Below, in pieces: positions 7,781 through 57,115 of a stretch of 64,000 bases of DNA (position 1 is the stretch's first letter; each line of letters starts with the position of its first letter). The translations under genes and the position numbers were made by a program. Source of the stretch: Zygnema circumcarinatum SAG 698-1b (lineage: Eukaryota > Plantae > Zygnematophyceae); the NCBI GenBank assembly GCA_037447605.1, contig CM074809.1, positions 982,689-1,046,688 of the forward strand, written 5' to 3'. The notes beneath the pieces were generated by a model. It saw only the letters and a program-made list of their open reading frames with translations. It did not search any database and was not told the origin of the DNA.

Positions 7781-10700
7781 ATGGAGAAGGCCTCCGTGCG
7801 GACGCGGTCCCGCGTGAAGCCCACGCGGCGATTCCAACTGCGGCCGCGCAGCAAGGAGAGCCGCAGCGTGCAGCGCCAGAAGAAGCTCGCGCAGACCGCA
7901 GCGCACCCCCCGCCCAAGACCGCACCCGCAGGTGCTGCTCGCTCGAGCACTGCCCGAGAGAGAGAGAGAGAGATAAGGGGGAGGAAGGAGGGCGTATTTG
8001 TAGTTATTATCTACTAGCGGTGATATATATATTGCAAAATATTTCTTTTTCTTAAAGATCGAGCGACTTTTCAAGTGTTTGCTTGTCTTCTCCAAGCTTG
8101 CACGGTCGGAGGTGCGGACTTTAGGGGGAGGGATGGGTAGATGTTGAAGTCTCTCTTAGACTCAGAGATCCTAAGAGTAGTACTAAGAAGTTTACTAGTC
8201 ATAATACGAGAAGGTTAACTTGTGAGTCTTTCTAAGACTCAGAGTGCGTTTGCAAGGGTAGGTTTGTTCGCAATACTACCCTCCGTTAGGGTTTGTTGCT
8301 GCTCAGCTTCATCCGCTCACATGCGAGCGGCTGAAGTGCGTCATGGCTGACGCGCATGGCGGAAAGATGCCCGCGCTGGCGCTTGTTTAGAGGAAGGAGT
8401 CGAGCATTTGCCATAGCTTAACCCTAAGAACCACGAGCTGGTGCAGCAAGACGTTAGCTTTTGGCGAGTTTTGAGTCCTCCGCTTGCTTATGAAGTAAAG
8501 GAAAGCACATGCTAGGTCTGTCGTACGTTGCTTTACTCACACGTTTGCCCTAAACAATACACTCATACACTGTTTGACATGCTTTTGTTTCTAATCTTGT
8601 CGTGCAATTTTCAGGAGATAGCAACATAGTGGCCCTAAGCAGCGCAGCTATGTCGACCTCGGCTCCCACGGAAGTGCAGCTTCTGGACAGTGAAGCCATG
8701 GCAGAGAGCTTGGATGCATCAGCAGGATGGTGCGGCCCTTTCCTGCTTCCACAGACAGCCGGGACTTTCTCAGACGCTTTCAGCTCACTCGAGGGGGAGT
8801 TAGGGCGAGGAAGGCGAGGTGATGTGCGGCAGTGCAAGCAGAGGGGGACCGGCCGACTCTGCGCCTGCAAGTCGATAAGCAAGTCGCTCTTATTGGTAAG
8901 AACTTCGGCCCCTTCGTTCTTTGATGCAGCGTTCGTACGCCGGCTTGCTGAGGTTGCTGCCTGCAGTTGACATGGCTATGCATAATTCTGTCCCTTCAAC
9001 ATGAACAGCTTCTTTCTGCTGAAAACGCTTAGAAACTCGAGCAATCACGCAGAAATATGATGTGTCTTCTTCTTCTCCTCGCCCTTCTCCCTTATTGATG
9101 AAAAGTACATGGTATAGACAGTGTCTAACATTCCCTTTGTGTGGTGCGGCAGCCGAGTCCGCCTGCCATTGCGGCCCTCCACATGGAGCTGAGCATTCAG
9201 ACGAGCCTCGCCGGCCACCCCAACATCGTGGAGCTCATCGGTGTGTACGAAGACCCCTCCGCGGTGCGCGTAGTCGCGGAGCTTTGCGCGGGAGGCTCCC
9301 TCGCAGACCTCCTAAGGAAAGCAAACGCATTTCGAGAACTCGAAGCCGCATGGCTGCTCGGGTGAATGCAGCATCCCAGCCTATAGAATTCTGCTCTCTC
9401 TCGCTTTCTACCAACTCTTCTTCCCTTTTTCCTGCCCATGTTTCTTACGTTCGATTGATTCGTGCGAGCAGGCGGGTGGTCGAGGGAGTGCACGCGTGTC
9501 ACAAAAGCGGAGTTGTACTCCGCAGCATTCATCCGAGGGCTGTTCTCGTTGGGAGGGGAGCTTCAGTGGAGCCCAAAATTGCGGATTTTTCGAATGCGGT
9601 GCAGCTGCCGATGGGACACGCGGCAACAGGAGCGGTCGGAGAGCTGTCGTACATGGCGCCGGAGGTTCTATGTGGAGCAATGTACGGCCCTGCCGTTGAC
9701 ATATGGAGCCTTGGAGTCACTCTCTATCAGCTGCTTTCCGGTGAGCGCTTGCATGTCAGGGTTTTTGAACTTGTCGAACTTATGTTTGGCACCTGCATGG
9801 GGTTTAGGGCTGTTGGAATGATGCGTGAGGAGTTTTACTGAACAAATAATAAGCTGGTGTTAAGGAGGACTGTTGAATAAAACTAAAGGTTGACAACCAG
9901 CGGGAGTATGCATTCCTTAACCAGGGCAGGGTAGTCTTACCGATAATCCTATACAGAAATGAGCTCATTCAAACCCGTTTCGTCAGCAAACCACGCGTTT
10001 TCAGTCCTCATTGAGCATTGCACGTTGTTAACATGTACTTTAGATTCAATTTTCATTGCAAAGTTTGCATTCCCCCCTCGCCCCTTCCTGCAGGCGTCCT
10101 TCCCTTCCACGGCGCAACCGCCCCCGAGGCCATGGCCTCCATCTGCCGCGCTCACCTCGACTTCCAGAGCCCTCCCTGGCCGTCGATCTCCTCCTCCGTG
10201 AAGGCTCTCATCCGTCAGATGCTGGCCCGGGATGCCCGCAACCGGCCCACCACAGAGCACCTCCTGCGCCATCCATGGCTTCGCCCCATGGGCTCAGCGG
10301 ACCAAGCCGTCGCATCCATCCAGTGTCTCCACTCCCAGCCCCTCCCCTCTCCCATGGCTGCCTCTCTCCTACCCTTCCCTCCACCCTCCCTCCCTCCCCC
10401 TCCTCCTTCCTCCTCCTTCCCTCCCTCCCATCTCCTTCACCACCACTCCTCCTCCTCCCACTTGTCCTTCCCTCAAACCCTTCTCCCATCTGCCCACTCT
10501 CCCCCCCTTCATGAACCTCTAATCCCCTCCCACCCACTCGCCCTCCAAACCCTAAATTCGCACTCTTCCACTCCCTCCTCCTTCCTCGCTCCCACTGCTC
10601 CCCCTTTCTGGACCACCGTTCCCCCCACAATCCCATCCGGCCCTCTCACGCTGCCACCTGGCCCGCCTCCCTCCATCTCCTCCTCCAGCGGCGGCTCCCC

Positions 10701-11298
10701 CCCCGACTCTCCCTCCCCCCTGCCGCCATGGCCAGGGTTCGTAAGAGACCTCTCCCCAGAGCCCCTCTTCGGCCACTTCCAGTTCCCGGCTGACCTAGCC
10801 GCCGACCACACGTGCGGCCGCCAACCGACATCCCCCTCGGGGCCGGGCCCCGAGTCCACTCTCGCGGCGCTCCTGGATCAACGGCTCGCGGTTCTGCGCC
10901 TGCCGGCCCCGCAGGGGGGGGCGTCCGTACAGGGATCAGCGGCGAATCTACCCTTGATCCAGGCGCAAATCGGCGGTGCGGGGGTGGATCCGCAGTTCGA
11001 GGCGTTGATCTCGTCGCGGGTGGACCCGTCGCGCTCGCCGTCGGGGACGTCGGATGTGACCTCCGCCGCTTCCCCGAAGGGGCTGCCTGGCGGCCTTGGG
11101 TTTGCGTGGGCGGAGGGAGGGAGGGGGAAGAGGGAGAGAGAGAGGGAGAAAGAGCGGGAGAGAGAGAGAGAGAGGGATGTGGAGAGGGCGGAAGGGAGTG
11201 AGGCGGAGAGGGAGTCCACGTACGACTTCCTGTGCGGCCTGCATGACCTGGCGGACCCGTGGCCGAAGGAGGCTGTGATGGAGCAGTTGGCGAGTTAA
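7781..11298 (+). CDS. CDPK/PEPKR-related protein kinase-like gene without EF-hands, probably a pseudokinase; about 5 exons; Pro/Ser-rich tail
   Basis: Exons give ELGRGRRG, CACKSI, GHPNIVELIGVYED, ELCAGGSL, VLRSIHPRA, KIADFS, YMAPEVL, DIWSLGVTLYQLLSG and LPF...LDFQSPPWPSISSSVKALIRQML...HPWL. Exon 1 (MEKASVR, donor after 7931) joins the 8615 acceptor in frame. Confidence 0.85.
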
Positions 11299-32622: not shown

Positions 32623-34080
32623 ATGGCGGCGGAAAGCCCTGACAGACAAGGCCCGGTGCCGGACCAGGTGGAAGGGCAGCCGCAAGAGGGGGAGCGCCAG
32701 CAGGGCCTTCTGGGGAAGGCTGCAGGGTCGCTCTACGACACAATATGGGGAGGAAATCGTGGGGACAATGGGGGGGAGACGGGGAAGCAGGTGAAAGAGG
32801 AGGGGGGGGAGGTTCGAGGGAAGATGGAGGAGGGAGGAGAGAGCGCCGTCAATGAAGGGAGGGAAACTTTAGAGCAAGGGAAGGAAGTCGGAAAGGAAGC
32901 GGTAGGAGAGGGGCAGCGTCAGATGGGGGAGATTCAAGGAGAGGGAGAGGAGGTGGCAGGGGAGATGAAGGAACAGGGGAAGCAAGTAGGGGAGCAGGCA
33001 AAGCAAGGAGGTCAAGAAGCCATGGATCAAGGGAAGCAGACGTTGGAGCAAGGAAGCGAGACGGGGAGGCAGGCACTTGGGCAAGGGCAGGAGAAGGGAA
33101 AACAATTCACTGCCCAAGCTGGGAAGAAGTTGGACGACGCAGGAAGAGTTGCAGGCAATGTTGCAGGAAAGACGGCTCGAAAAGGGGAAGATGCAATGGG
33201 AAAAGCTCAAGAACAGGGTGGTCGCGTGACCGGCCAGGTAAAGGAGATTGTTGGGCAGTTGGAGGGCCAGGCGAAAGGAAAGGCCGAGCAGATGTATGTG
33301 CAGCTGGTAGATGGGGGCCCGGATAAAGAAGGGGAGGGGCCTCTAGCTCCAAGCAACATAGTTCAGAGTGCGGGGCAGTTTTTTGGAGCAATGAGAGCGC
33401 AGGGGGGCGGGGTGGGACAGGAAGCGGAGTCGTTTGCTCGGGGGGTAAAGTCGACAGCGGAAACAGCAGAGGGAGTATGGGACAAGGTTCCGGAAGGCGC
33501 GAAAAGGACGATTGCAAGAGGGGCAGAAGAGGTCACAGGAACTATGGAACGCCTATGGACGAAGGTGTTCAGCTTAATCGAGAAAGCTCTCGATTGGCTC
33601 GACCGGAATCTCTTCCCAGCCAACAGACCGGAAGACTCCGATGACGAGGGTATGAGTTCAAAGTTGTATCAGGCGGGGGAGTATGTGAAAGGCGAGGGAG
33701 CAAAGGCAATGCAGTACACTAAGGAGAAGGGTGAGACAGCCGCTGAGTACATGAAGGAGGGAGCCGAACAAGCTGGCGATACTGTTGTGAAGGGGGGCGC
33801 AAAGACCGCCAGTTGGTTCGGGCTTCGCAGCAGAAGTGAGGCGGAGAAACGAAGGGCAGAGAAGGAGAAGGCGAAAAAGAAGGCGCAGAGAGAGGCGGTC
33901 AGGCAGAAGCGTTGGAACACTGTAGCACTGGTGACCAAGCTGGTGGGAGGAATTGTGAGCCTGCTTGTTGGAACAATGCTCGTTTTCCTCCTCGGATTTC
34001 TCCTTCTGCCGATTCTGTTCGTCGCGCTCATTTTTAGTGTTTTGGGAATCCAAGTTTACGCCTGCATTGGGCTGGTTTAG
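32623..34080 (+). CDS. Intronless 485-aa group 3 LEA-like hydrophilic protein with a C-terminal hydrophobic anchor
   Basis: G/E/K/Q/A-rich with 11-mer periodicity (ETLEQGKEVGK / EAVGEGQRQMG / EIQGEGEEVAG / EMKEQGKQVGE). A basic stretch is followed by about 45 hydrophobic residues at the C-terminus. Confidence 0.7.
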   Translation: MAAESPDRQGPVPDQVEGQPQEGERQQGLLGKAAGSLYDTIWGGNRGDNGGETGKQVKEEGGEVRGKMEEGGESAVNEGRETLEQGKEVGKEAVGEGQRQMGEIQGEGEEVAGEMKEQGKQVGEQAKQGGQEAMDQGKQTLEQGSETGRQALGQGQEKGKQFTAQAGKKLDDAGRVAGNVAGKTARKGEDAMGKAQEQGGRVTGQVKEIVGQLEGQAKGKAEQMYVQLVDGGPDKEGEGPLAPSNIVQSAGQFFGAMRAQGGGVGQEAESFARGVKSTAETAEGVWDKVPEGAKRTIARGAEEVTGTMERLWTKVFSLIEKALDWLDRNLFPANRPEDSDDEGMSSKLYQAGEYVKGEGAKAMQYTKEKGETAAEYMKEGAEQAGDTVVKGGAKTASWFGLRSRSEAEKRRAEKEKAKKKAQREAVRQKRWNTVALVTKLVGGIVSLLVGTMLVFLLGFLLLPILFVALIFSVLGIQVYACIGLV

Positions 34081-35296
34081 TCGTTTAAAAAATGATCAGG
34101 GCAGTTTTGGACACATGCAAAGAGAAGCGTTTAAAAGGCAGGAGAGAACCGCAAACAAGGGGTCGTGTGATGGAGGTGGGTCAGAAAAATCGACTGACAT
34201 AGAAGTCGGAAAAATCTTGTACAGTATCATCGAAGTAGATCTAAAGCGGGCAAGATGGAAGTGACAGCTGGAGCAGCGCACTCCTCACCTGTAAATTAAT
34301 GGTTTTTAATAGAAACAAATTGCTCTGAAGTGTTTCAATAATGTGATAGTGGCTGCTTGGCGATCGAAGCTGTTCTGTTTTTCATATAATGGGAAGGGAA
34401 GAAACAAGTAAATGAAACTTGTTGCTGAGTGAATGCTGCGTTGATGACGGATGCTTTTGTTGCATGTCAAATTGGAGCAATTCTATCATAAACTGAATAT
34501 CTATGGCTGGTTTGCAGTCAGAATTCAGCGCATTTCTTAAAAAAAATGCTAAAACATCGCGTTATTAATCGCCTTTCTGTTTACAAGTGTGAATGTTAGT
34601 GCTCTGCTTCGTGGACGGTGAATGAAAAGTATCGGCTGGACGGAGAGAGAGTGAGTCGGGGGTTTAAGAAAGGGGAGGAGTGCACCTGCGAGAGGAGGGA
34701 GGACAGGAGAGAAGAAGGACGTAGACGAGGGAAAGGATGGGGGGAGGGAAGGGGCGGTAGGGCGCTTGAGACCAGCGATCAGGGCAGGTTAGGTGCAGAG
34801 GAATCGGGTAGGGAAGAGAAGGGGAGGGAGGGGGAATGGAAGCTGGAGGGGTACAATAGGGACAGCGAGGGAAGGGAAGGGAGATGGAGAAAAGAGGGAA
34901 TGACTTGCAGAGGAAGGGAAGTAATGGGGAGGATGGGTAGTACTTAGAAAATGCAAGTAGAGCTGGAGAGCACAGCATCCACGGAAGGAGCCATATGAGC
35001 ACGTGCACACATTCGCGCTTCAGCAGCAGATGGAATACAGTGCCAACTTCACAAGTTGGTGGGGTAGGTTTCATAGGCTTGCGCAGAGTAACAAACATAA
35101 CTTCTTCGGAACAGGATCCTGGAAGGGGGAAAAAAGGAAATGTCGATCTTGTATATGAGGATGAGGATGAGGCAGTGCCTAAAGCCCATGCTTTGACAGT
35201 GGCATTACTCATGGGGCTTACCAAAAGGCTGGCCAAGCATAGATTTAAGAAGTTGGCGCGAAAAAAACATAGCTAATGCATGTAAGTCGTGCGGTA

Positions 35297-38200
35297 TCAA
35301 GGCATATCAAGAGACTCCCTTGGATAAGCATAAAAGAACCCCAACCCTAAAATGTACTCGAGCCCCCCGAAACCTAGCGCGATTTGAAGGAAAATTTGCG
35401 CTAATCGCGGTGCAGGAGGGAGATGCCGAACTTCTGAATTTGGTCCGGAGCCCTCAATACTAATAGCTGCCCAAAGGAGAAAGGGAGCTACCGCTGTTGT
35501 TAAACCTCCTAAGAGCCCTCGTAATCCAATCGTTAGTATGAAATGCTCTCTAGCAAGAGACTGCAGCAAGATGTAGTTCGTTGCAAAGAGTCGCACTACT
35601 CCCGGCATTGAAGCAAGGACCATGATGGTCACTATGCATGGCTTGGAAAAGCCACCAAAGAGGTACCAAGATAACGTTACAAGGGCGGTCGATGGAGGGA
35701 GGATGTATGAGAGAAGGGGGGCAGAGATAGGATAGTGAAGTCTAACTTTTTCCAAAAGATGACCAACTCCGAGTGATGCAAGCGCTGTTGCTGTGAAGAT
35801 CGTTGTGAGCACGCTCGCCACCTGTAAGTGTATATGAAAGAGGGATACAAAAAAAAAAAACTGATCAGGTTAGAGAACAGCTGCTGGAGCACTGCTAAAG
35901 CTGCCAAGAATTGGATAAAAATTGGTCCTCTCGCACCTCTTTGTTGGTCCATCCGTCCGCATATGCCCACACGATGAAGAAGGTCACAGTGCCAAGTGTC
36001 GCTCCTTGAGACAAGGAAATGAGGAGAGCTATCCACACAGTTTGGCGGTATGCGAGGAGCCCCAACTGGCCCTTGGAGGGGAGGAGGCGGAGGGAGTATA
36101 TTGGAGGGAGGGGCCGCACTGCGATAGTGACAGCCATCAGCGTAAATATTCCCGAAAATACAAAAACGATGATGTTTTTTGCCGCGAGTCGAAGACCTGC
36201 AAAGAAACGCCATGCCGACGAGTAGTAAAAAAAAAGGGTGTCCATGGCGGTCGAGGGATCCTAGGAGAGAAAATGTGAGCCTGTTTGAGTATGGACGCGT
36301 GGCAGCTTACCAGCCTTGCCGGCCGTAAGGATCAGGACTGCGCCAGCCCCTGCTTGAAGCAAGTTCCGCAGAAATTCACCCACGCCGATACGATGCCCCA
36401 CTTCAACCTTTCCAGGAATGTCCTCCATAAAATTAAGTCCTGCCATGTACCATATTTCCCAAAGTTTGTTCTATGCTACTTACAAATATAAGTTTCAAAC
36501 GTTCCATGTTTTGCACGGTTGTGAATTTTTTCCAAACTCCAATCACATTTATTTACTCACCAATCATGACGGGTGGGGCGAGAGCTGCAGATATCGCCGA
36601 GAATACTGCCGCTCCCACGATGTGAGCAGTCCAGCGATTGGTCAGTCCCAGCCAGACCACACTCACAGCTTGCCCGGCGAGGCCGAGTCGGAGGAGGGTG
36701 ATAGGGCGAAGGCGCAGAGCGAGCATGGACCACGCTAAGGAGGAGATGGCGTAGGTAAGAGAATAGAGCGCTATGAGGGAGGAAGCAATACCGAAGGAGA
36801 ATCCTCGTCCTTCTCTCCACCACCTGCGTTGAAAGGTTCTATAAGCCGTCTGAACTCAGCTTTCGTAGTTCCGATCTTGGGGTGTGAAGTGACATTGGTT
36901 GGTCTTGTGATAGCCCATAATGAAACAAGTCAGTGCCAGGATTAGGGTTTATGGAAGACAAGGCTTACCAAGATGAAGATAGCAATACAACAAGAACGCC
37001 GGGGACGAAATTCAGCACATATGCCAGAAAAAAAATCGCCTCGTGAAGCTGAACGCACGACCTTTTCGGTTTGCAGTCCAGGTCGGAACCTAAAGCCGAC
37101 GAAAATTCATCTGCAAGCTCGTCAATTTTTGACTCCGAGAGCGGTGGAGGTTGGGCTTCAATCAGTTTCCTTCTCCGAACGCAAGGAACTTGCGACAGCC
37201 ATTCGGCATATTGCGGAGGGAATGCAGCAGGAATTTCCTGTTCCAATCTTGGTATTTCTTGATGGAGAGTCATGTACAAACGAGTATATTTTGCAAACAT
37301 GTCCTGCACATCACAAGGATTCTAAGGGAGGAAATTAGGTTAAAGCATACAATCGGGCTTCTGCAAAATGCAATGTAACCCAGTTTCTGGAAATCATACC
37401 TTTCCAGAGAACGTGGTTTGTACAGCCTCCCTCCGAAGTCGATCTTTGGTCTCCTCGTCAGCCGTAAGGGCCTCATGAATCGCGCAGAGGAGCTGCAACC
37501 TTTGGTGCTCTTGCGAAGAGGATAACAGGGGACGATAAAATCCGGGCATTTTTCCAAGACCCCCCTGTATTCCATATAAGCCTTCCATAAATTAGAATCT
37601 AGAAACACAATCCTTGTAGAAACACAATCCTTGGTTGAAACAACAATTGCAATTCAGAACCCAACCGTGAAAGAAGAAACTTCCCAATAGCAAGCCATCC
37701 ATACTCCAATCTATCTGAAAGGAATCCCTAGAGAAAACAAATCAGAATCCAATGAAGTCCTTCATTATGTTCCTGCGTTATGCGAGAACTAGAGACCAAA
37801 CTTTTGAATCGTTTAGACTTGTCTTGTGGCGATCCATGCATCGCGCCTAACTGCGCCTTGCACGGGCAGCCATGCAGATCCAAGGGCTGTGCGTGCGCCA
37901 CCTGTCGGAATCCGACGGCCAGCGCGCCCCGCCATCCGAACTCGATGTCGACGAGCCCGCACGGCTCGAAGCGGCTCGGCATCAGCGCGAAGTCCGCGGC
38001 GCGCAGCAGCCGCTCCCTCTCCGCCGCGCCCACCAGCCGGTCCTCGCCGTGCACTCGCCCCGGGAACCGCCGGGCCGCCGCCGCTACCATCTGCGGGAGG
38101 GGGGGGGGGGAAGGAGAGAGGGGAAGGAGGATGGAGGAGAGGGTTGGAGGAGAGGATGGGAGGAGAGGATAGGCATGGGGCCACTGGAAGCTGGATCGGC

Positions 38201-41200
38201 TTTTGGCTGATGGGATCAGCAGGGTTGGCGATTCAGGTTGAGTGAAAGGAGGGTTTCGAGGGAGGGCGGTTTTGAGGTTATAGAGCAGGGGAGTTGGAAT
38301 TGGGATGAGATGTGTTGTTGAATATACGAGTTGACGATTTGATCGCGTGGTTTTTCTAGAGTATTTGGCGAAGGCTCACCTCAAGGCCCTTTCGGCCGTG
38401 CTCATCCGTGCATGGTCCGAGGAGGATGATCTGCGCGCTTGGATATGTCGAGAGAACCTCTTCCACAACATCGGCAATGATGTCGGTTCCCTTTTGGTAA
38501 CTCTGACGGCCCAGAAATACGAGCAACTGGGATTCACTTTTCCGTTGATTTTCCAATAAGTGTAGCGAGCATTCTTTGTCTGTACCGCAGCCTTGTTCGT
38601 CAAAAGCCGCCAATCGTACATCTGTAGTTTTAGGTGTCGACATCTGATTCTCTTCGTCAGATGGTTCTGCAAAACAGGAAGATAAAATCAGTTTCGATAA
38701 AGTTGTTCTATTAGGTCAACGGGGCTTCTGCTTCTCCCTCCTTATAGTAATTTTCCAGCCTCTTTAAGCGTCCTTTACTTCCTACTTTTAGTTCTTTACT
38801 TTCTTTACTTTTCTTTTACTTTTTTTTTTTTCTTCTTTCTACCCTTCACCCCTATCTTCTCTGTCCTCTCTCCTCTACTACCTTCCCGCTCTCCATTGTC
38901 AGCCTATCCTTCTCGTTCTCTCCCAGTCGACTCTGCCTTTGACGCACTTGTAGATATAGAAGTCCAATCTCAAGTGAAACTTCTGCTGCATAGGAAATCG
39001 TGGAGAGAACCCACCTTGTGTAGAAGCTCCGATTTCGTCACACGTATTCAGAAGGCCATAGCTAGTTTGCACCCATCCCTTAGCATCCCTCTTCCACGAA
39101 TTAAGATTATCACTGTCAATGTCAGGCTTTTCCGCGTCGTCAACAGCATTAAGAATCCCTTCAATGTTTTCCAGGGACCAAAACATGCTGTGCTTTGAAG
39201 CCAGCCGCTTCCCATAGAGAGGAGACACTGCCACAATTCCTTGGCCAGATTGGAACTTTCTTATGTAGTTTAATCCGGCATTAAGGCAGTTGAAGGTTCC
39301 CGCATGCTCGCAGTACTGCTCAAAAGTTTCTTCTGAAAGATTGAACGTCGACAGGACGAAGGAAAGGTGATCAGAACTTCGTATGCGCCAAGCACCCTGC
39401 AATGCCAGACTTCGGTTCAGAGTACTCAGCGATTCCCAAATAGTGCTGCGTTCTTTGCTCCATCCATTATTTTTTACGCCATCAGAATAATATACAGAAA
39501 ATCTGCAGCTTTATCAAAAAAATATGAGTCATGGCGGAAAAAGGAGAAGTGGCGAGGGGTACCTGAAAGTCACCGTTGTGAAGGGTCAGACAGAACTTTG
39601 TGGAGATATTTCGTTGGAGATACACCACTGCCATGCATGCTGCACGCATTTTAAAATTCCAAGCTATGTGTAAGTCGAACAAACGGGGAGAGGGGAAAAG
39701 GAGGAGGATCAGGAGGGAGAAGGGAAAAAGGCTGGGGAAAGACAACGGAGCAGAAAAGTACTCCTACCATGGTAATCATGAATGTGACAAATGTCAGCAG
39801 GGTAGAGACTCAAGACGCGCGCAACCGATTGACTCCACAAGGAGTAAAGGGCCATTTCTTCAGCTTCGTTCTTACACCTGATCGATAGACACTCATCCAA
39901 GACAAGCAACGACTAATATTACTACTGGTATTAGTTATGAAATATAGAAATACTCAAATCGAACTTGTTTGGGATCATTCAAAGATTCAAACGAAGATCA
40001 TTAAATGGTCCCTGTTGTCATGCAAGCATCATGAAAACGGCAACTTTGAACGGTAAACACAAGGAGAAATGGGGAAAAAACTCGTTCACTCTCTCCCTTC
40101 CTTTTTTCTATATAGAAAACATCGTACTGGTAAATTGTTCTCGATGTCCTCTGTTCGAAAGTGTCCGATGAAATCAAGTAAAAAGTTCGCCACTTCTCTT
40201 CGACCAGCTCGTGTAATATGTGCACCTTCACGGGAATAAACTTTCCACGAACTGTGACATAGAACTCGTTTCGAGGTGGAGGAAGTTTGTGTGTGGGGAG
40301 ATCCCCAAGTTTTGGTACAATAAGGCAAAGTGCCAACGGAAATTTTCGGATGAAGAGATCCAACACCTGGCCGACAAAGCCAAGGGAGAGATTCCAGCAA
40401 ATGAAGTTACAGGACCGAGTTCCGCAGTTCGGATCTAGTAAAAACGCCACCCCGCGACTACATGTGAAACCTTTCTTTCCTGAGCTCCAAATCCCTTAAA
40501 ATCCTTTCATAGATTATGATTCAGATGAATATTAGATTGAGTGGTCGTGGACATACCTTATGAAGCCCCCCTATAGAGACAGAATAGTCAAGGCAAGGAA
40601 TAGAGTACTCGAGTGCTACGTGTACTATAGACGGCAGCATGCCGTCATCGTGAGTCGTGTCCCTCCATCGTATGTAACTTTCTGATTGCTGCTTCGCAGA
40701 CAGCTCATCACAAGTCAACGTCTCTGTTTGAGAGGCGCGGCGGACCCAATCGTGGCCATTCACTCTAAAAGTCATGCCTTTTTCCGGCTCGATGATGCTT
40801 TCTGTTCGAATGTCTTCAAAACATCCCGGAGAGTCCCTTTGGACGGCACCATTCAGCCGCCGAGGTGGTGAAAGTTTCGCCTCAATATCAGAATCCGACG
40901 GCTCCCATATGAGGCTGCCATTGGGACTTAAAATCGAGTCCGGCGACCACTCTTTCGACGCCCTCTCAAACTTTTCAGAAGGAACCGCCGTCATTAACTG
41001 CTTCAGTTTTCCGGAATCGAGCAGATTGTTGAGGATAGCTGGGTAACTGTTCAAGGAGAGGCCCTGCCCCACCGACTTCTGCAACTCTGAAAAGGGCGAA
41101 ATAGGATCCATGGAATAAGACCGGTTTCCGCAGAGCTCGATCTCTTCTGCACTCCTCCCTAGGTCGAAGACCTTCCTTTCTAAGTTGTAACATTTGTTAG

Positions 41201-41258
41201 TTCCCCACTTGCCATGAAAGTTCTCACGCGTACTAGCCTCAACTGAATGCATGTCCAT
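35297..41258 (-). CDS. Ags1/Mok-like alpha-glucan synthase: GT5 (glycogen/starch-synthase fold) domain plus multi-pass membrane domain; about 13 exons, roughly 1200-1300 aa
   Basis: LEYSIP..VSIGGL, ALYSLWSQSVARVLSLYPADICHIHDYHG, LTLHNGDFQG, FNCLNAGLNYIRKFQSGQGIVAVSPLYGKR, LVFLGRQSYQKGTDIIAD, MPSRFEPCGLVDIEFGWRGALAVGF, GGLGKMPGF. Several hydrophobic exons follow, ending LLQSLAREHFILTI...FFYAYPRESLDMP*. The start codon is tentative. Confidence 0.88.
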
Positions 41259-41689
41259 GCCGCGCCACTTCCCCACTACTTCTCTCTCTCCCTCTCCTCC
41301 CTTGCTCTCCCTCTCTCTCTCCCTCCCCCTCTCCTCAGGGCCTTCCTTTCACCGCCCTTTCACCCTGCGTTCACCAGCTTCCCTCGTCCCTCGCCATCGC
41401 CATTGCTCTCGGAATCTCCAAAAACCCTAAACCCGACCCATCCCTCGCCTTCTCCCTCCCTCCCTCCCTCCCTCCAACCCTCCCTCCCCTCTCTCCCTCC
41501 CTCTCTCCCTCCCTCAGTCTCCCTTCCTCCCTCCCTCCCTCCCTCGAGGTCCCCCGTCGCGCGTTCCCTTTCGAGGCCGCAGAGGTGGCGCTGGCGCGGC
41601 GCGCAGTGCCTGTCCGCGTCCCTGAACCCTCCGAACGGCCCCGCCGGTCCCATACCACGCTGCCCCTTGAACCCTGCAAGTGGAGGTAC

Positions 41690-42190
41690 GTGGCCCTTGC
41701 AAACTCCGCCGCGTGGCGAGGTAAAAAGTTCTTGAGGCCACGTGGCCCAACATGACACGTGACACACTGCCATTGGCGGGTCGTTGTCCACGAGCAAAAC
41801 GGTGGGCCCCACTTTCGTGGGCCGCACGAAGTCAATGGCAGCCACGTGGCATGCAGTCAAGCCGGTCAACGCCCGCCTAGAGGGTCACTGTCGTTTGCGG
41901 ACGGTTGCCACGCTGGCACGGGTTTGGACCATGACGTGGTGGTCACGTCTTTATCGTACGGCCTCTGACCAGGAAACACCGTATCCGGCGTACGGATTGA
42001 CTTCCGTACGGCGCTGCTAACACTGTTTCGTACCGTACGGACAGACAGGGGGCGGGGGCAGCCCCGCCCATCTCCGCTCTGCGGAGGGGACGAGGGGAGG
42101 TGCCACGTGGCAGGGGGCGCCACGTGGCGCGCTGAGGGCCTGCCATGTGTGGGCACGTCCTGCTGGCGCTGCCGCGCACGTGGGCACGCC
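41690..42190. promoter_or_regulatory. Bidirectional promoter between the Ags-like and DHHC genes, rich in G-boxes and GTAC cores
   Basis: At least six CACGTG hexamers (several GCCACGTGGC) and five CGTAC cores at 41955-42040. Confidence 0.55.
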
Positions 42191-42342
42191 GCTTGGACCT
42201 CATGTGGGCCCTCCTCCCTCTCTCTCCCTCTCCCCCTCTCCCTCTCCTTCTCCCTCTCCCTCTCCCTCTCTCTCCCTCTCCCCCCCCCTCTCTCTTCTCT
42301 CTTTCCCCCTCTCTCTCTCTCTCTCTCATCTGAAGACCTATC

Positions 42343-43451
42343 ATGTTCGTGTTTTTGCGTTCGTAGCCGTGAATTACAGCGCTAAGCTTAACCCTAACCC
42401 TAAATTTAAGGCTGATTCCAACCCCCGGCTCTAATCCTGCCCCCCCCGGAGAGGGAGCCTCCCCTGCAGGCTGAGCGCGTGCCTGTCACGGTGCGAGACG
42501 TGGTTTGACGCCGCCATCCGCGTGTCGGGGCCGATCTACATTGCGCTCGCCGTCACTCTCATATCGTGAGCGCCTCATCGATTGCCTGCACCCCAACCGC
42601 CCCGCGAAGCCTATAGATGCCCTTGTAATTCTTTTATATTTCTTAATTCAGCGCTGAAAATAATTACATTCAATGCATTTCAAAAGCAAAGAAAGTAGAG
42701 GACGGCCTTACGAAAGAACCCGAATAGCTTAGATGGCCTTAGGTTCAGAAGGCCTCAAAAGAATCCTGTAAAGGAGCATTGAGTACGAGTATGCATATGT
42801 CCCTTCAAGCTTAGACCGACGTTCCATTTCACATAAAGCTATGTTGCTCCTATTTTCCCTCTCTTCCGTTCCAGCGCGGTGATCTATGTCTACTTCACGG
42901 CTGTTCTACCTCTCACCTGCGCGATCCTTTCCATCAACGGGTTCCTCCACTGTCTGCTCGCCACCTGGCTCGCAGGAAATGTTTTTTTCAATTACTATCA
43001 CTGCGTCACTACGAATCCGGGATCTCCTCCGGACCAGCTGGTAGGTGCAAACCCTAAATGTTCTTCTACAAAACTATGAAAGACAATTTTTAACCTCTAA
43101 CTTTCACTTGGTGAGTTGTTTGATCTGGGAAAAGCAGAAGCTGTCTACCTTCCTGCTTGTTCTGGACCCTGATCTCCATTTGTTGGACAATGCAGGAGAT
43201 GGAACACAATGGCGGCCCTTATGGTGAACGGCTAACCCAGAAAGCTGTTCGATGGTGTAAAAAATGTGAGTGGAATACAAACATGTAGTTGAGGTTCCTT
43301 CGTTTTTGGTCACCATAACCCAAAAACAATGAAAACTTCAGATACTCTGAGTGACTTATCCACTCTTGCATGGGTAGAAGACTTTCAAGTGTTTCTGTTT
43401 GTCTGAGAGAGACACAGAGAGAGCGACAGAGGGAGGGAGGGAGGGAGGGAG

Positions 43452-46487: not shown

Positions 46488-48907
46488 ATGCGGGCTGCTA
46501 CGGCCCTGCAGGTGGAGGACGAGGGCGTAACCTCGGGCTTCTCTTCTCGCCCGCTATCTCTCTCCGTCCCGCCCTCCCTCCAGCCATGGCCGGCGGAGCA
46601 GCTCCCTCCCACCCCCCACAAGCGCGTCGCGCAGACCCAGGCCGCCGCCATGACGTCCCTCGCTGCCGGCCCCGGTGGAAGCTCCGGAGCGCCGTCCATG
46701 GCGCCGCCCCCTTTTCTCTGGTCCCCTGAAGAGGCTCCGAAATGGAGCTCGCTTCCAGCGGGCGGGCCTCTGGCACCTGGAGGAGCTTTGGGTCAGACTC
46801 CAGAGCAGCCTCCGACTCCGCATAAGAGAGCGGGGAGGGGGGGAGGAGGGTTGGAGAGGGAGAGGGAGAGGGAGAGGGAGTGGTTGGTGGGAGGTTACGG
46901 GGGGGGAGGGAGGGAGACGGTAGTGAAAATGAAGAGGAGTCCGAGCATGCCGAGGTCGCCGACAATCACAAAGGAAATCAGCAGTTTAGCGGATTTATCG
47001 CAGCTCAGTGGACATGGAAATGGGGCGTGCTGTAATGAGCAGAGATGGTTGGACCTTCAGGTGTGTACAGGGGCAATGGGGCCTCCTTTTCCCCCGTTGG
47101 GCGGTGGAGTTTTCTTGCTTTGCTCTGGAACGAGAGATTTCAGTTGCCTCTGGCAATGTATGTTCTGACAGCTGCCATGCTGCAATGTTTGGATGAGCAT
47201 AAATGTTTAGGTGGTGTTTGTCCACATACAAATTAATTTCTAAGGGGTTTTTCTTTGTTCTGTTTGTGTGTATATCTATTGAACTCGGGATTCACAGCCT
47301 CTCCTCCCAGCCATTCTTGTGACGATAGCGTTGCTTTTATGGTGTCTTCGAAGCCTCTCCTCGCCGACCTTCACCTTTTGGATTTTTCCGGATGACTTCG
47401 TAACGAGATCGTGGCTGAAACTTTTTGTATTTTTTCTCCTTATCGCCTTCGCTGCTCTCCTCCTGCGGCTTTTATATCCCTCTTTTATCGTGCTTCTTCG
47501 AACGCCTGACATCTGGCAGCTCAATTTTAATCTACAATTTAATCTCAGTGGTCTGCGTAAAGGCCTATGGCCGGTGCTCAGGAGAGGAGTGAGATACTTC
47601 CATTTTACTGCAAAGAAAGATGAGCTTTTAGGCTATTATCAGAGCAAAAAGGGTTATTATAAGAGCGGGAAACCCTCGTCGGGACACGGACTTAGCTGGC
47701 AGGCCGGAAGCGTGTTCAGTTCTCCTCCTGCTAGACAGAATTCGCTCATAATGAGTGGAGGAAGTAGGAAAGTAGAGAGTCCGAAAGTTACAGGATGTGG
47801 GGTGCATACTTACTCGAATGGGGACCGTTATGAAGGTGAATTTTATCAGGGGAAATGCTCGGGAAGTGGGGTTTATTATTTTGCATTGAGCGGTCGATAT
47901 GAAGGGGATTGGGTGGATGGGAAATATGATGGATACGGCGTGGAGACTTGGTCGAGAGGAAGTCGATATCGAGGACAGTACAGACAGGGCTTAAGGGATG
48001 GTTATGGAGTGTATCGATTCTATACCGGAGACGTGTACTCGGGACTTTGGTCAAAAGGGCAAAGCCATGGAGTTGGAAGTCAGACGTGTGCAGATGGGAG
48101 CCGGTATGTGGGCGAGTTTGCATGGGGGTCCAAGCACGGATACGGAAAGTACATATTCAGGTGAGACAAGGTCGAGAAGCATTGGAAGATTCAGCCTGTT
48201 TAGCTTACACTTTAGGGATGCAGGGAAACGGGTTCTGCGGGAGGGAAAAGTTGGTCATTAAGCGGTTTTGTGTATGCATGGGGTGCTCGGCGCAGGAACG
48301 GAGATGTGTATTCGGGCGAGTATTTTGCAGATAAGATGCATGGGTTCGGGGTGTATGTGTTTGCGAATGGCCATCGGTATGAGGGGGCATGGCATGAAGC
48401 TCGGAAGCAAGGATTGGGGTGCTATACTTTTCGGAATGGAGAGACCCGTGCGGGGCATTGGAACAAAGGGGCGCTGGAGACTCGCAGCACGCATTCAGCA
48501 ACAAGTGCTTCCGCCACAGCTGTAAACCACAGCAGAGTCCTCCACGCAGTGCAGGTCTGTAGCTCGCCAGAGAATGGCCACTCCCCGCTTCTTCACTTTT
48601 AGGTCACTTTTGGGGTCTGCCCATGTTGAAGGCCCCCTATCATCGTTTTCCCTGCAGTCATTTCCCTCTCTCTCCCTCTCCATTTGCCCCCCTCTCGTTG
48701 GTTTTTTCCTGCGTTGTTTATTTCTCTTTTTGATGTGAATGAATGCAGGAAGCTCGTCGTGCAGCATCTAAAGCTGAGAATGTAATGCTGGTGGAGGACC
48801 GCGTGAGTAAGGCTGTAGCGGGAGCAAATCGGTCTGCTGTAGCGGCGAGAGTGGCGGCAGTGAAGGCAACGCAGCAGAGCTCCGGCGGAAAACTTGCGGA
48901 GCCATGA
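46488..48907 (+). CDS. Membrane-anchored MORN-repeat protein (plant MRF1/junctophilin-like family); 4 exons
   Basis: Hydrophobic segments, then YSNGDRYEGEFYQGKCSGSGVY and further MORN repeats; C-terminus VSKAVAGANRSAVAARVAAVKA. The start could be 46488 or 46650. Confidence 0.92.
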
Positions 48908-53600: not shown

Positions 53601-56600
53601 AATGAACTTCTGGAAGGATAGGAAAGCGGAGCTATAAAGAGGGGGAAATCAGTTTTGGGTTTGCGTTGGGCTTGTGGGGGCTTACCGTGATTGCAGCAAG
53701 GGCTGATTGAGTTTGGTTCAAGGCAGCCTTCACATGCTCTGAGTTCAGAAAGGCGTGATAAAGATTCCTCTAAAACGAATGCCACGACAATTGAACGAAG
53801 GTAAGGGGAAAAGAAACCCTCAAACTTCCCACTTTAATTGACATCTCCCTCTCACCCTCTCCCATCTCTGATTACACTTTATCCAAGCTCCCTGCATGGG
53901 GGCCATGCCGTTAAAAAGAACAGTGCAGAAATCGAGGCAAAAGAATCCGAACATGCTTTTGCAAAGGTTTAAGCTTGACTTGTACCTGTCGCTGAGTGAG
54001 CGGCAACCACACAATGAGATCTGTCTTTTTGGAAAAGTTTGGAGTGGCTGCAGATGATGATGCAGCGGAGGGGGCAGACTGCGCAGAGCAGATGTCTGCT
54101 TTCAGGCGCCGCAGCAAGAAAGGGGCAATTTTTTTCCTTAAATTCTGCAACAGAAAACGGGTGTTGAAACATGGAAGTGTTCAGTGAAAAGTGCAAAGGG
54201 ACAAAGCAATGCGCATCTCCCCATGAAACTCGAGAAGCTCGTTTTCGAATGATTATAGGATGACGATGAAAAGTTCAAGAGTTCGCCTTTTCAAAAGTTT
54301 TTGCAAAGGATTATGATTTATGTTCATCTTTTGTTGGAAATCATTCACGACAAGTCCATACCTCTGCAGCGGCATTGCCCTTGAGTTTTTCCCGCGCAGA
54401 AGCATTCTTGTCGCTACCGAATGTGATACTCTTTTCATAAATCTCCCGGAACCTAATCAGAAAAAAAAAAGCAGCTACATCATTGGCCACAATCGTCCAG
54501 AGGAGTTCCAACAGAACACATGAGTTTTTACTCTCACGTTTGCATCAGTGTTGAAATTCCATGAGACTATTAAGCCAAGACAGTCATGTTGATTGTAGTT
54601 TCAAAAGAACTTACTCGGTCTTTTCACCGAGCAAACCTTCGCAGCACAAGTTGAAAAGAGCCCACAACTCCTGTCATCATCCATTCACAAGACGCATGTC
54701 AGCACAACCTCTGCAACCAAAACCCTTTCTCCTAACCAGCCACTCTCTCCCATGATGTTTAGCAGCCGTACACGCCCATAATAAGCTGCAGAATAAACGA
54801 CGAGGTTGACTTCCCTCCCGATATAAAAAGTGTGACCTTCTAGTACACTATGCGCACCAGATTTGATTCCAATCTACGTAAAATAAAAAAAACAGACTCA
54901 CCTTCATGTGATTCTGAAGGGGAGTTCCCGTCATCAAAATGCAGTGCGAGTAGCTCAGTTTTTTCAGCCCCTGATAGGACTTTGTACTGGGATTCTTCAC
55001 TCTGTGCCCCTGAACCCATAAAACCCTTCTTGCGCTTCAGTTAAGTCACGGCTGCTGATGCACGCATCCTGTTAACATACACACAAAATCGACAAAGGAA
55101 ACTGTGAATTAAACCAGCAGCATTGCTTGGGGTTAAGGGCACAGCCGTACTTCATCCAGGATGAGATAGTCCCACAGGTTTGTGAGGTGGCTGACGTCAG
55201 GGACGGTGAGCCCACAGAGGGCCTCGGCGTGGCCGGGCACCATCTCGTAGGTGGTGAGGAGGACCCCACCAGACTGCGCAGCAAGGAGGGAAATAGTTTC
55301 AGTAATATATATATATATATATATATATATTTTTATTTTTATTTTTTTTTTTTTTTTTATTTCTCTTCAGAAATAAGCTTTTGTAACACAATTCATGAGT
55401 GATGAAAGAAGTGGGGCAGACATGCAACAGCCAAGGAAAAAACATGAACAATTGAAAATAGGTAAAGATGGAAACTAGCTTTTGTTTGAGGACATAGAAG
55501 GCTCTAGAGAACACGAATATAATAAAAATTGCAAAACCGGTAGCAAGCCATCTACAAAATGCTAGTTAATCGCAGAATAAAGGACGCAGTGAGGTGATTA
55601 TGAAACAATAGTGAATACTGTGAAAATATGACTTTGGAGGCTTTACAAAAGTAGTGAAAAAAGGAGTAAATTCAGTCACCTGTAAGGTCCGTGCGAGAGC
55701 TGCATCCCTCTGTCCTTTGCCCACGGTAGAGACATAGCTGCACAGTGCAACAAAGAAGATGGAGAGAGGGTCGAGTCAACTGAAGGTGTTGCATGTGCTG
55801 CAATTAACAGATGAAGCTAAAGCAATAGCAACACTGCAAGATTGAGTAGCAGCTGCTTACGTGTGCACCCTGTGCTTGAGTCCAACGAAGTCAAGTTCTG
55901 TTTCCCACGTCCTTATAAGAGTAGATGGGAGGACCAAAAGCACTCTCTTGGTGAGTTTAGACCGAAACAACCCAGCGATAAACGAGGCAACCTGTGAGAC
56001 TCCGCATGGAAGAACGTCAGGTCATCATAAGAGTTGCCTTAGAATATGTTTGAAGGTCGTGAATAAGCAACAGTGTATATCCTACTCCATACAAACCGTA
56101 TGAGCAATTTCATCATCTTTGATTATTAGCACAAATATAAACACATTCAAGTCCTACCATGTCTCCTGTTCAGAGTTCCGATGTACAAACAGACATTACC
56201 ACGTTCCAATCATGAGACCATGATCATCACATTTTTTTTTTTTTTTTTATCAATTTTGATGTTACATTTGATTCCATAGAACAAGTCTATAGGCTGTATG
56301 ACTCGCCTGCCGAGTCTTGCCAAGGCCCTGCAGGACAAAGCAACACATGACAACTTGTCAATGCGAAATTATTCATTAAAAAAAGCTGCAACGAGGAACA
56401 CTCTTAATTTGCCTCACTTTCTCGCCGTGCGAATCCAAAAAAGTGAGAGTGAAATTTTCAAAACTGACTTTGAGGGACAGTTGCAGAAAGGAGGAAAGTA
56501 AAAGTACGGGGAGCTGAAGCTCTCCTCACTTTCGGGCCCATCATATGAGACAACCAATATCAGCGAAGCATCCTCAACATCAGCAGCAGGAAAAAAGTTG

Positions 56601-57115
56601 ACAAAGTTCACCATATCATCGCCGAGAATCCCTCCGCGCCCCATCTTGTGCAGGCCCCACATCCACTGTATGCCCTCCCGCTGGTGAGGGTATAGGCCCG
56701 CAGCTAAAGTCCCAGGGAGCAAAAATTCTCCGTCACCAAGAACAAAATCTGTTGGGACAGTTTTCTTGGAAGTTGGGGGCAAAACCTCTTCCTCGTCGTC
56801 ACTTCCAAGATCTATCGATGCAATTTTCTGCGCAACATTTTGGAATGGCTCCACTTCGCATACTCCACTGGCCCCTGGACGACGAGGTTGGATTCCGCCA
56901 TTTTCCTTTTCTATACTCAAGCCGCGCATCATCTCCGTCAGGGAAGGGCTTTGCAAGCTGCCGCCATTGCCGCATGCAGCTCCTTCACTCGCCAGAGCAT
57001 TCTTCCTCCTCTCTGCCTCTCTCCTCTTCATGACAAGCTCCTCCAGAGCCTTCCTGCTGCTCTCGTTCGGAGGAACCACTCGAGCTTCCCGAATCTTTGG
57101 CTGCGCAGGATCCAT
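50640..57115 (-). CDS. CHR24: SNF2-family helicase CHR24 / ERCC6L (PICH)-like; multi-exon
   Basis: [118 protein letters not shown] and C-terminal KLPDGG coiled coil. Confidence 0.9.

Follow-up and report, generated by a model that had tools for sequence, protein, structure and literature searches.

An Ags/Mok-like GT5 domain fused to an MFS-fold membrane domain in Zygnema circumcarinatum: a putative shortened alpha-glucan synthase

Does the genome of Zygnema circumcarinatum SAG 698-1b encode a fungal-type alpha-1,3-glucan synthase, as was originally predicted from a stretch of 64,000 nucleotides (hereafter the window), and what might such a protein do in a green alga? The gene in question lies on the minus strand, with its ATG at 41258-41256 and its stop codon ending at 35297 (Table 1), and its reading frame is uninterrupted over 3663 nt in 13 exons, without stop or frameshift. 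All 12 introns are GT-AG and measure 96-348 nt, and each of the 12 junctions was seen as a CT..AC joint in transcript contigs (Logan; runs X1, X2 and X5), so that the expectation of an intact, intron-rich gene encoding a GT5 domain and then membrane helices is borne out by RNA-seq contigs from three runs. An X1 contig of 2746 nt extends from exon 5 through exons 6-13, placing the GT5 and membrane exons on one transcript rather than on separate ones, and it overlaps with another X1 contig that spans exons 1-5. The gene agrees without differences with contigs of three studies annotated as the same organism. The predicted start codon, the first ATG in frame below an upstream stop, and the 5' end lie beyond the reach of the transcript contigs. 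The encoded protein has an N-terminal region of ~205 aa, a GT5 domain (aa ~205-735) and 12 membrane helices (aa ~800-1220). As to base composition, exon 7 has a GC content of 0.76 and a GC3 of 0.92.

Table 1. Position and content of the Zygnema Ags-like GT5-MFS gene and its exons in the window.
Feature	Residues	Coordinates	Strand	Content	Basis
Whole CDS	1220 aa	35297..41258	(-)	13 exons, 12 GT-AG introns	
Exon 1	1-234	40557..41258	(-)	~205 aa without recognised domain, then GT5 start (LEYSIP...SIGGLHK)	
Exon 2	235-313	40128..40366	(-)	GT5 N-terminal Rossmann half	Transcripts, spliced model, alignment
Exon 3	314-350	39768..39877	(-)	YSLWSQSVA and HIHDYH	Transcripts, spliced model, alignment
Exon 4	351-376	39563..39639	(-)	LHNGDFQ at its end	Transcripts, spliced model, alignment
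Exon 5	377-503	39015..39396	(-)	Ags-type 6-residue insertion (YIRKFQSGQGIVAVSP) and start of ~50-aa lineage-specific insertion	
Exon 6	504-599	38380..38666	(-)	Rest of ~50-aa insertion, then FLGRQSYQKGTD block (Arg/Lys of GRxxxQKG)	
Exon 7	600-662	37902..38090	(-)	Catalytic-Glu block PSRFEPCGLVDIEFGWRGALAVG	
Exon 8	663-717	37400..37564	(-)	Ags-type motif GGLGKMPGFY	
Exon 9	718-828	36969..37303	(-)	GT5 end, linker, membrane helix 1	
Exon 10	829-916	36561..36823	(-)	Membrane helices 2-4	tblastn match of P0014 membrane domain
Exon 11	917-959	36311..36439	(-)	Conserved loop NFMEDIPG...R.G and helix 5	
Exon 12	960-1046	35937..36196	(-)	Helices 6-7 and conserved P..Y..RLP loop	
Exon 13	1047-1220 and stop	35297..35821	(-)	Helices 8-12, ILLQSLAREH, terminal YPRESLDMP	

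The GT5 region resembles Ags/Mok proteins far above chance (BLASTP E 1e-59 to 1e-70, ~30-33% identity over ~500 aa), compared with E 1e-10 to 5e-5 for classical GT5 enzymes. When exon 5 was searched with phmmer against 1.84 billion representatives, only 142 matches were returned, and the ~15 that could be named, which are spread over the clades of the tree (S. pombe Mok11, Colletotrichum Ags1 and algal and protist relatives), were all Ags/Mok-like, with no starch or glycogen synthase among them. A maximum-likelihood tree sets the Ags-like family, including the Zygnema protein, apart from four classical GT5 outgroups with a support of 100/99, and the Zygnema protein has in common with this family a 6-residue insertion and the signatures HDYH, LHNxxFQG, IEFGWRGA and GGLGKMPG. 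The motifs of exon 3 have the Ags/Mok counterparts YSAWNQC and HINDYHG, in a region where classical GT5 has HDWQ. As judged from its sequence, the Zygnema GT5 is a member of the Ags/Mok-like branch, clearly apart from the starch and glycogen synthases, outside which it also falls in the tree; the original prediction that its signatures lie nearer to fungal Ags1/Mok than to plant starch synthases agrees with the BLASTP searches, the tree and the 6-residue insertion. The fungal strings given in support of that prediction are found in real Ags/Mok proteins among the search results, and the algal motifs quoted with them are all present, with the correction that HIHDYHG runs one codon into intron 3 and that the spliced mRNA encodes HIHDYHA. 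A classical GT5 starch or glycogen synthase is ruled out by the tree, the family motifs and the 12 membrane helices.

This domain retains the catalytic residues, Arg and Lys in GRxxxQKG and Glu in EPCGL; exon 7 aligns with E. coli glycogen synthase over residues 340-384, a stretch that includes the PSRFEPCGL block. Also present are the glycine loops and the HDxH block with its His, with one deviation, in the first loop, which reads SIGGLHK where the family has GGLGK (His replaces Gly). The ~50-aa insertion in exons 5-6 is lineage-specific. The domain keeps the conserved residues of a competent GT-B retaining glucosyltransferase, and activity is predicted. The FEPCGL block is of the classical type, fungi and dinoflagellates having DEPFG at this place.

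The C-terminal domain, with 12 predicted membrane helices, was compared with its counterparts by profile. A profile made without the Zygnema protein, from 26 further members of the family outside the fungi, scores it at 63.6 bits (best of 200 shuffles, 7.4 bits), and profile-profile alignment (hhalign) with the Dikarya Ags membrane domain gives a probability of 98% and an E of 1e-13 over 356 columns, both C-termini ending together. An HMM from Dikarya alone does not detect the Zygnema domain, and the similarity to the fungal Ags1 domain is remote. The original prediction had likened the end of this domain (LLQSLAREH...YPRESLDMP) to that of Ags; the string ILLQSLAREH and the terminal YPRESLDMP are indeed there, and a C-terminal motif [YF]x[RK]E.L..P is common to the Zygnema protein and Ags/Mok. 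On these profile comparisons the domain is homologous to the C-terminal domain of Ags1. No Zygnema exon has a significant sequence match to Pfam MFS_1, which is matched by one of the 26 family membrane domains. The modelled structures assign the C-terminal domain the MFS fold: the best 50 PDB matches of an AF2 model of exon 13 of the Zygnema gene itself (pLDDT 87) are all MFS transporters (Z 8.3-12), and the Atlas feature score of this exon for MFS likeness is 0.97. For the full length a proxy stands in: the model of the nearest full-length relative (P0014, from Chromosphaera) combines a GT-B domain with a Z of 33 to E. coli glycogen synthase and a 12-helix MFS domain with a Z of up to 36.5 over 375 residues (VAChT, VMAT2).

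One part of Ags1 is missing. Pfam alpha-amylase (GH13) matches none of the Zygnema exons, and tblastn of full-length Mok11, Ags1 and the GH13-bearing P0088 against the 64 kb found only the GT5 and membrane exons, a result that covers the gene model and the window and leaves room for an exon further upstream. The signal peptide and the connecting helix of Ags1 are also absent, and the N-terminal ~205 aa have no Pfam hit and no match to any family member. As a full Ags1 homologue, then, the protein does not qualify by Pfam and tblastn. S. pombe Ags1 is reported to need its GH13 domain as well as its GT5 domain for function, each being essential (PMC12305055).

What would a protein of this design do? 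We consider it reasonably probable that an alpha-glucan synthase facing the cytosol is here coupled to an exporter of the MFS type, in a shortened form of the Ags/Mok-like enzymes. According to this model, the N-terminal region and the GT-B (GT5) domain would lie on the cytosolic side and convert a nucleotide-glucose donor into an alpha-linked glucan, while the fused 12-helix MFS-fold domain would anchor the enzyme and pass the product across the membrane, as hypothesised for Ags1. With the extracellular GH13 transglycosylase missing, chains would be joined or remodelled on the outside by a separate enzyme, if at all. We infer the topology, the glucose donor, that the product is a polymer, its linkage, its export and the membrane involved. 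An alpha-1,3 linkage is possible by analogy with fungi; neither it nor the donor can be read from the sequence, and we know of no residue that sets glucan linkage. The extruded alpha-glucan of wall, mucilage or spore coat that was originally envisaged, taken as alpha-1,3-linked, is purely conjectural.

Several points weigh against this model. The usual cargo of MFS proteins is small solutes, moved by alternating access, rather than polymers, so a role as a 'channel' is hypothetical even for Ags1; the GH13 domain is missing; the first glycine loop departs from the family's GGLGK; and the likeness of the membrane domain to that of fungal Ags1 is remote. The product might instead be a small molecule, either a glucoside or a short oligosaccharide, such as a compatible solute, a primer, or a disaccharide of the nigerose or kojibiose type, which the MFS domain would export or import by alternating access. 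This would fit the canonical MFS fold with its 12 helices, which in structure comes closest to carriers of small solutes, the Pfam MFS_1 match of the Chromosphaera relative (E 3e-14) and the lack of a GH13 chain-joining domain, but we regard it as unlikely, as the GT5 domain is nearest to processive glucan synthases (Ags and the starch and glycogen synthases) and the single MFS_1 match among the 26 membrane domains points to divergence from ordinary transporters.

The fusion of GT5 to a membrane domain is conserved across the whole Ags-like family, which argues for a membrane-coupled role and weighs against a second alternative, that of a synthase of glycogen- or starch-like alpha-1,4-glucan, tethered to the membrane, whose product stays on the cytosolic side and whose MFS domain serves as anchor or regulator. 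We rate this as distinctly unlikely, even though every solved GT5 structure that matches is an alpha-1,4 synthase, the FEPCGL block is classical where fungi and dinoflagellates have DEPFG, and fungal Ags1 itself is thought to require an alpha-1,4 primer (PMC12305055): the tree places the protein in the Ags-like family, off classical GT5 (100/99), and green algae already possess a full set of plastid starch synthases (PMC3797821).

Loss of the GH13 domain that chlorophyte relatives keep, together with a long branch in the tree, the lineage-specific 50-aa insertion and the G-to-H change in the first glycine loop, could also mean that a tripartite GH13-GT5-TM ancestor has left a gene in decay, still transcribed yet non-functional. 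Such decay is very improbable in view of the open frame of 3663 nt over 13 exons, splice sites that are all canonical and used, and the retained catalytic Arg, Lys and Glu and family motifs; moreover, GH13-less GT5-TM proteins occur in Chromosphaera and dinoflagellates as well, so that the architecture recurs.

The synthase and exporter reading that we favour leaves the question of ancestry. Members of the family were found in Micractinium, Chlorella, Scenedesmus, Picochlorum, dinoflagellates and the ichthyosporean Chromosphaera, and a literature search found no paper describing any non-fungal member. The Dikarya Ags proteins form a clade with 100/100 support that leaves the Zygnema protein outside, and forcing it into this clade is rejected (AU p = 0.004), whereas a common clade with chlorophyte GH13-GT5-TM proteins is not (AU p = 0.38). 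From its phylogeny and distribution, the family is old and broadly eukaryotic, not fungal-type as had been proposed, and its spread over chlorophytes, dinoflagellates and an ichthyosporean, with the Zygnema protein outside Dikarya, indicates that this is not a fungal gene that entered the plant lineage. That the gene is no contamination, as was originally argued from its introns, is supported by its place in a multi-gene window and by the reads of several studies of the organism, which match it without differences. Acquisition of the gene from a fungus in recent times, or contamination of the assembly by a fungus or lichen, was tested and rejected and is extremely improbable, notwithstanding that the best-annotated relatives are fungal Ags/Mok proteins and that one exon deviates in GC content, since to the rejected Dikarya placement are added 12 spliceosomal introns, plant-type neighbours on both sides (MORN/PIP5K-like and CDPK-like), the exact match of transcript contigs from three same-organism studies and the lack of GH13, which is carried by those named fungal Ags proteins that were examined.

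These findings raise a broader possibility, which we hold to be doubtful at present, that green algae including Zygnema make an extracellular alpha-1,3 or mixed alpha-glucan through Ags-like synthases, with the MFS-derived domain acting as a polymer translocon. If this were so, a built-in transglycosylase would be dispensable for synthesis and export, as the GH13-less form would demonstrate; fungi would not have invented their wall enzyme but inherited it from an ancient GT5-MFS module of eukaryotes; and the extracellular alpha-glucan of green algae would be one so far unrecognised.

Among known systems, fungal Ags1/Mok share with the Zygnema protein the family-specific GT5 motifs and insertion, at ~30-33% identity over ~500 aa, followed by a homologous 12-helix C-terminal membrane domain with [YF]x[RK]E.L..P at its end. 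The Zygnema protein is shorter (1220 aa against ~2400 aa for fungal Ags1), lacks the signal peptide, extracellular GH13 domain and connecting helix that fungal Ags1 possesses, has FEPCGL in place of DEPFG and lies outside the Dikarya clade. In the GT5 domain it is chlorophyte GH13-GT5-TM proteins that come nearest to the Zygnema protein, with 35-36% identity, for example Micractinium tetrahymenae KAL4459197.1, with further relatives in Chlorella ohadii, Elliptochloris, Symbiochloris, [Myrmecia] bisecta, Picochlorum, Scenedesmus ('mok12') and Tetradesmus. These share FEPCGL, GGLGKMPG and a multi-helix C-terminal domain, but most keep the N-terminal alpha-amylase (GH13) that the Zygnema protein is without, and their membrane domains are weakly similar to it in sequence. 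The best overall match is P0014 (EP01135_P003011) of Chromosphaera perkinsii (Ichthyosporea), likewise a GT5-MFS protein without GH13, with 32% identity in GT5 (E 6e-70), 25% in the membrane domain (E 3e-26) and YPRE.LD.P at the C-terminus of both; it comes from an opisthokont protist, and its membrane domain passes Pfam MFS_1 (E 3e-14) where that of Zygnema fails. Classical GT5 enzymes (E. coli GlgA, 2qzs; GBSS, 6gng; Arabidopsis SSIV, 6gne) agree with it in the GT-B fold and in the catalytic blocks with Glu, Arg and Lys, but are soluble or granule-bound, without a membrane domain or the 6-residue insertion, and carry KTGGL and HDWQ-type motifs. Finally, the MFS transporters VMAT2, VAChT and Spns1/2 share the predicted C-terminal fold, with Z 34-36 for the proxy and up to 12 for exon 13; unlike theirs, the MFS-fold domain of the Zygnema protein is fused to a glycosyltransferase.

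The Ags-like gene on the minus strand of the window is expressed and encodes a GT5 catalytic domain and a membrane domain in one transcript. Six-frame reading of 34-44 kb gave a row of open minus-strand segments with GT5-like and hydrophobic translations, which join at GT-AG sites into 13 exons separated by 12 introns of 96-348 nt, giving a coding sequence of 3663 nt and a protein of 1220 amino acids with no internal stops. When assembled Logan contigs (not raw reads) from four runs labelled with the same organism were aligned to 35285-41280, 12 of 12 junctions were recovered as CT..AC joints with no mismatches. The extent of 35297-41258 and the roughly 12 introns of the original prediction are both correct. 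Its motif strings were also right, save that 'HDYHG' overruns exon 3 by a codon; the spliced message reads HDYHA. A 2746-nt contig of run X1 starts in exon 5 and continues to the 3' end, which places the catalytic exons on the same mRNA as the membrane exons; a second contig of this run (1223 nt) spans the inside of exon 1 to exon 5. The start codon was taken as the first in-frame ATG following a stop and is reached by none of the transcript contigs, which makes the 5' end the least certain part of the model.

Coordinates of the exons of the Ags-like gene and of neighbouring features in the window
Feature	Coordinates	Strand	Basis or nearest match
Exon 1	41258-40557	-	spliced model
Exon 2	40366-40128	-	spliced model
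Exon 3	39877-39768	-	spliced model
Exon 4	39639-39563	-	spliced model
Exon 5	39396-39015	-	spliced model
Exon 6	38666-38380	-	spliced model
Exon 7	38090-37902	-	spliced model
Exon 8	37564-37400	-	spliced model
Exon 9	37303-36969	-	spliced model
Exon 10	36823-36561	-	spliced model
Exon 11	36439-36311	-	spliced model
Exon 12	36196-35937	-	spliced model
Exon 13	35821-35297	-	spliced model
Kinase exons	9062-11298	+	sole database match a plant CDPK
MORN-repeat ORF	47319-48164	+	nearest clusters Streptophyta PIP5K-type proteins
SNF2-domain fragment	56414-57115	-	

Several further features of the locus were observed. Exon 7, which encodes the catalytic-Glu block, has a GC content of 0.76 and a GC3 of 0.92, the other 12 exons having a GC3 of 0.43-0.63 and the introns a GC of 0.34-0.55; the feature takes in about 100 nt on each side of the exon, and could stem from GC-biased gene conversion acting locally or from conversion by a paralogue rich in GC. 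Within intron 6 there is a plus-strand GT..AG transcript joint (38234-38358), of low depth, seen in run X2 only and with a short side of 28 letters, which may represent an antisense spliced RNA. Immediately upstream of the start codon, long GA/CT and GGGAGG low-complexity tracts (41300-42400) yield spurious long ORFs on both strands. Downstream lies a convergent single-exon ORF of 485 amino acids (32623-34080, plus strand), rich in Gly/Glu/Lys/Gln repeats, with one C-terminal hydrophobic helix and no match in Pfam; a transcript contig with the 3' exons of the Ags-like gene extends about 2.3 kb into this region, so that the two genes may overlap at their 3' ends.

Pfam searches with single exons returned GT1-type matches that were all sub-threshold, the exons being too short, and exhaustive phmmer searches and homologues were therefore used to place the catalytic domain. 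Exon 5 matched 142 proteins among 1.84 billion cluster representatives. About 15 of these can be named and all are Ags/Mok-like, coming from fungi (Schizosaccharomyces pombe Mok11, Colletotrichum Ags1 and Coccidioides Ags1), green algae ([Myrmecia] bisecta and Micractinium tetrahymenae), the ichthyosporean Chromosphaera perkinsii and the dinoflagellates Symbiodinium, Amphidinium and Polykrikos; neither starch or glycogen synthases nor embryophyte proteins were seen among these named matches. Since starch and glycogen synthases occur throughout bacteria and plants, 142 is far below the number expected had exon 5 matched such enzymes. Among the 1.84 billion representatives, the sole relative found with more than 45% identity was a 960-nt Logan contig of SRR24581284, in which an exon sharing about 50-54% identity with exon 5 lies between non-coding-looking flanks.

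The spliced protein behaves in the same way. BLASTP aligned it to Ags-like proteins with E values of 1e-59 to 1e-70 (30-33% identity over about 500 amino acids), against 1e-10 to 5e-5 for four classical GT5 proteins, and in a maximum-likelihood tree (LG+C20, 36 rows, sampled from whatever the searches returned) the Ags-like family including this protein stood apart from the classical GT5 outgroups with support of 100/99, as the original prediction had supposed from motifs. Derived characters common to the family are an opening LEYxIP...GGLxKV, YS(L/A)W(S/N)Q, HxHDYH in place of the HDWQ of classical GT5, LHNxxFQG, IEFGWRGA, GGLGKMPG(F/W)(Y/W) and a 6-residue insertion (YIRKFQSGQG). Conservation extends to the Arg/Lys of GRxxxQKG and to the Glu of PSRFEPCGL, whose block aligns with the equivalent one of E. 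coli glycogen synthase (within residues 340-384), and because these residues are kept the enzyme would be expected to be active. Between the two Rossmann halves lies a lineage-specific insertion of about 50 amino acids (residues ~493-543; 38380-38666 / 39015-39060), which crosses the RNA-confirmed exon 5/6 junction and carries GxGTD...L..L; its weak phmmer match to annexin repeats (whole-sequence E 2e-6, no single repeat significant) is probably due to chance.

The membrane domain shares this ancestry. By phmmer, residues 796-1220 matched the C-terminal domain of P0014, a GT5-MFS fusion protein of Chromosphaera perkinsii, with an E value of 4e-26, and more weakly the GH13-GT5-TM proteins P0182 and P0132. 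A profile of 26 other non-fungal family members, from which both the Zygnema protein and P0014 were left out, scored the domain at 63.6 bits, against 7.4 for the highest-scoring of 200 shuffles. An HMM built from Dikarya alone did not detect the Zygnema protein, and an iterative search from the non-fungal side reached fungi weakly; comparison of the non-fungal and Dikarya profiles gave 98% probability and an E value of 1e-13 over 356 columns. The C-terminal ends of the two alignments coincide, and ILLQ(S/T)L(A/T)REH and a terminal [YF]x[RK]E.L..P are common to both groups there. P0014 passes Pfam MFS_1, which matches 1 of 26 family membrane domains, and the MFS assignment therefore rests on fold, not sequence. 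Full-length fold evidence comes from P0014 as a proxy, whose AF2 model has an overall pLDDT of 75 (about 90 for GT5, 70-90 for the membrane part). Over about 375 residues this model aligned with VAChT, VMAT2 and Spns1 (Z 34-36), and its GT5 part aligned with glycogen synthase of E. coli (Z 33). The Zygnema protein is represented by a model of exon 13 (built with family rows, pLDDT 87), for which 50 of the 50 best PDB matches were MFS transporters, mostly the C-terminal bundle (Z 8.3-12), and for which language-model features gave MFS at 0.97. These models indicate that the membrane domain has an MFS fold, and that the Ags membrane domain is MFS-derived.

In the assembled layout, residues 1-205 match no Pfam family or relative, residues ~205-735 form the GT5 domain, followed by a linker, and residues ~800-1220 form 12 hydrophobic helices arranged as 6+6. 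No coding sequence for an alpha-amylase (GH13) domain was found in the gene or in the 64-kb window, in which tblastn with full-length Mok11, Ags1 and the GH13-bearing family protein P0088 matched the GT5 and membrane exons only.

In MFS proteins both termini are cytoplasmic. From this topology, and from the retaining GT-B nature of the glucosyltransferase, the N-terminal region and GT5 domain should lie on the cytosolic side, with nucleotide-glucose as the expected donor. According to the hypothesis for fungal Ags1, GT5 builds an alpha-1,3 chain upon an alpha-1,4 primer, the chain crosses by way of the membrane domain, and GH13 links chains together on the outer side (PMC12305055). By analogy, the Zygnema protein would synthesise an alpha-glucan and export it, with no built-in joining step; here we infer the donor, the nature of the polymer, its linkage, its export and the membrane involved. 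Less probably, a small glucoside or oligosaccharide might be moved by ordinary MFS transport, a reading favoured by the transporter fold and opposed by the kinship of the GT5 domain with glucan synthases. The protein might also, again with lower probability, be a membrane-tethered alpha-1,4 synthase; the classical type of its FEPCGL motif speaks for this, and the grouping of its GT5 domain with Ags-like proteins against it. Finally, and improbably, it might be a decaying remnant of a tripartite ancestor, for which the missing GH13 domain speaks and against which stand the open reading frame, the spliced transcripts and the retained catalytic residues. Synthesis and export of an alpha-glucan is the most probable reading.

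With the Micractinium protein as query, GH13-GT5-(TM) proteins were found in Micractinium, Chlorella ohadii, Elliptochloris, Symbiochloris, [Myrmecia], Picochlorum, Scenedesmus (named 'mok12') and Tetradesmus, as well as dinoflagellate and other protist transcripts, all annotated as hypothetical or automatically named. When alignment A2 served as a profile query against the word-indexed protein database, with candidates capped at 8000, it matched at least 14 proteins, and among the matches listed there was no close relative or own-genome protein. In the tree the Zygnema protein is one of four unresolved basal lines, the others being Chromosphaera, a chlorophyte clade (100/100) and a clade of dinoflagellate-type and Dikarya proteins (98/96). 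Transfer from a fungus is rejected, since the AU test rejected a forced grouping with Dikarya (p = 0.004) and did not reject one with chlorophytes (p = 0.38); a recent fungal origin or contamination is thereby excluded, and the gene may have descended vertically within the green lineage. Protein P0175 had no prokaryotic relative among GTDB representatives, and there is thus no evidence of bacterial origin. To judge by their sequences, the neighbouring genes are, tentatively, consistent with a green-lineage nuclear region.

Alpha-1,3-glucan synthases have been reviewed as confined to Dikarya fungi (PMC7389562), and surveys of algal glycosyltransferases list GT5 as starch synthases only (PMC3797821, PMC7027972); the literature searched held no description of non-fungal Ags-like enzymes, database entries for relatives notwithstanding. 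Contrary to the Dikarya-only view, a green-lineage alga expresses a GT5-membrane module of the Ags type, and genes for such modules occur in many chlorophytes, in dinoflagellates and in an ichthyosporean, which traces the fungal enzyme to a eukaryotic family older than the fungal one. It offers wall and mucilage chemists a concrete gene with which to look for an overlooked algal alpha-glucan, and the MFS derivation of the membrane domain bears on how the glucan, or its precursor, crosses the membrane. The homology is solid, the function putative and the family not unique to the Zygnema genome; in the broad sense the gene belongs to the Ags-like GT5-membrane family. The label 'fungal-type' does not hold in its strict sense, for in contrast to fungal Ags1 the Zygnema protein falls outside the fungal clade and has no GH13 domain; this form is nature's own test of how far such an enzyme depends on the transglycosylase part.
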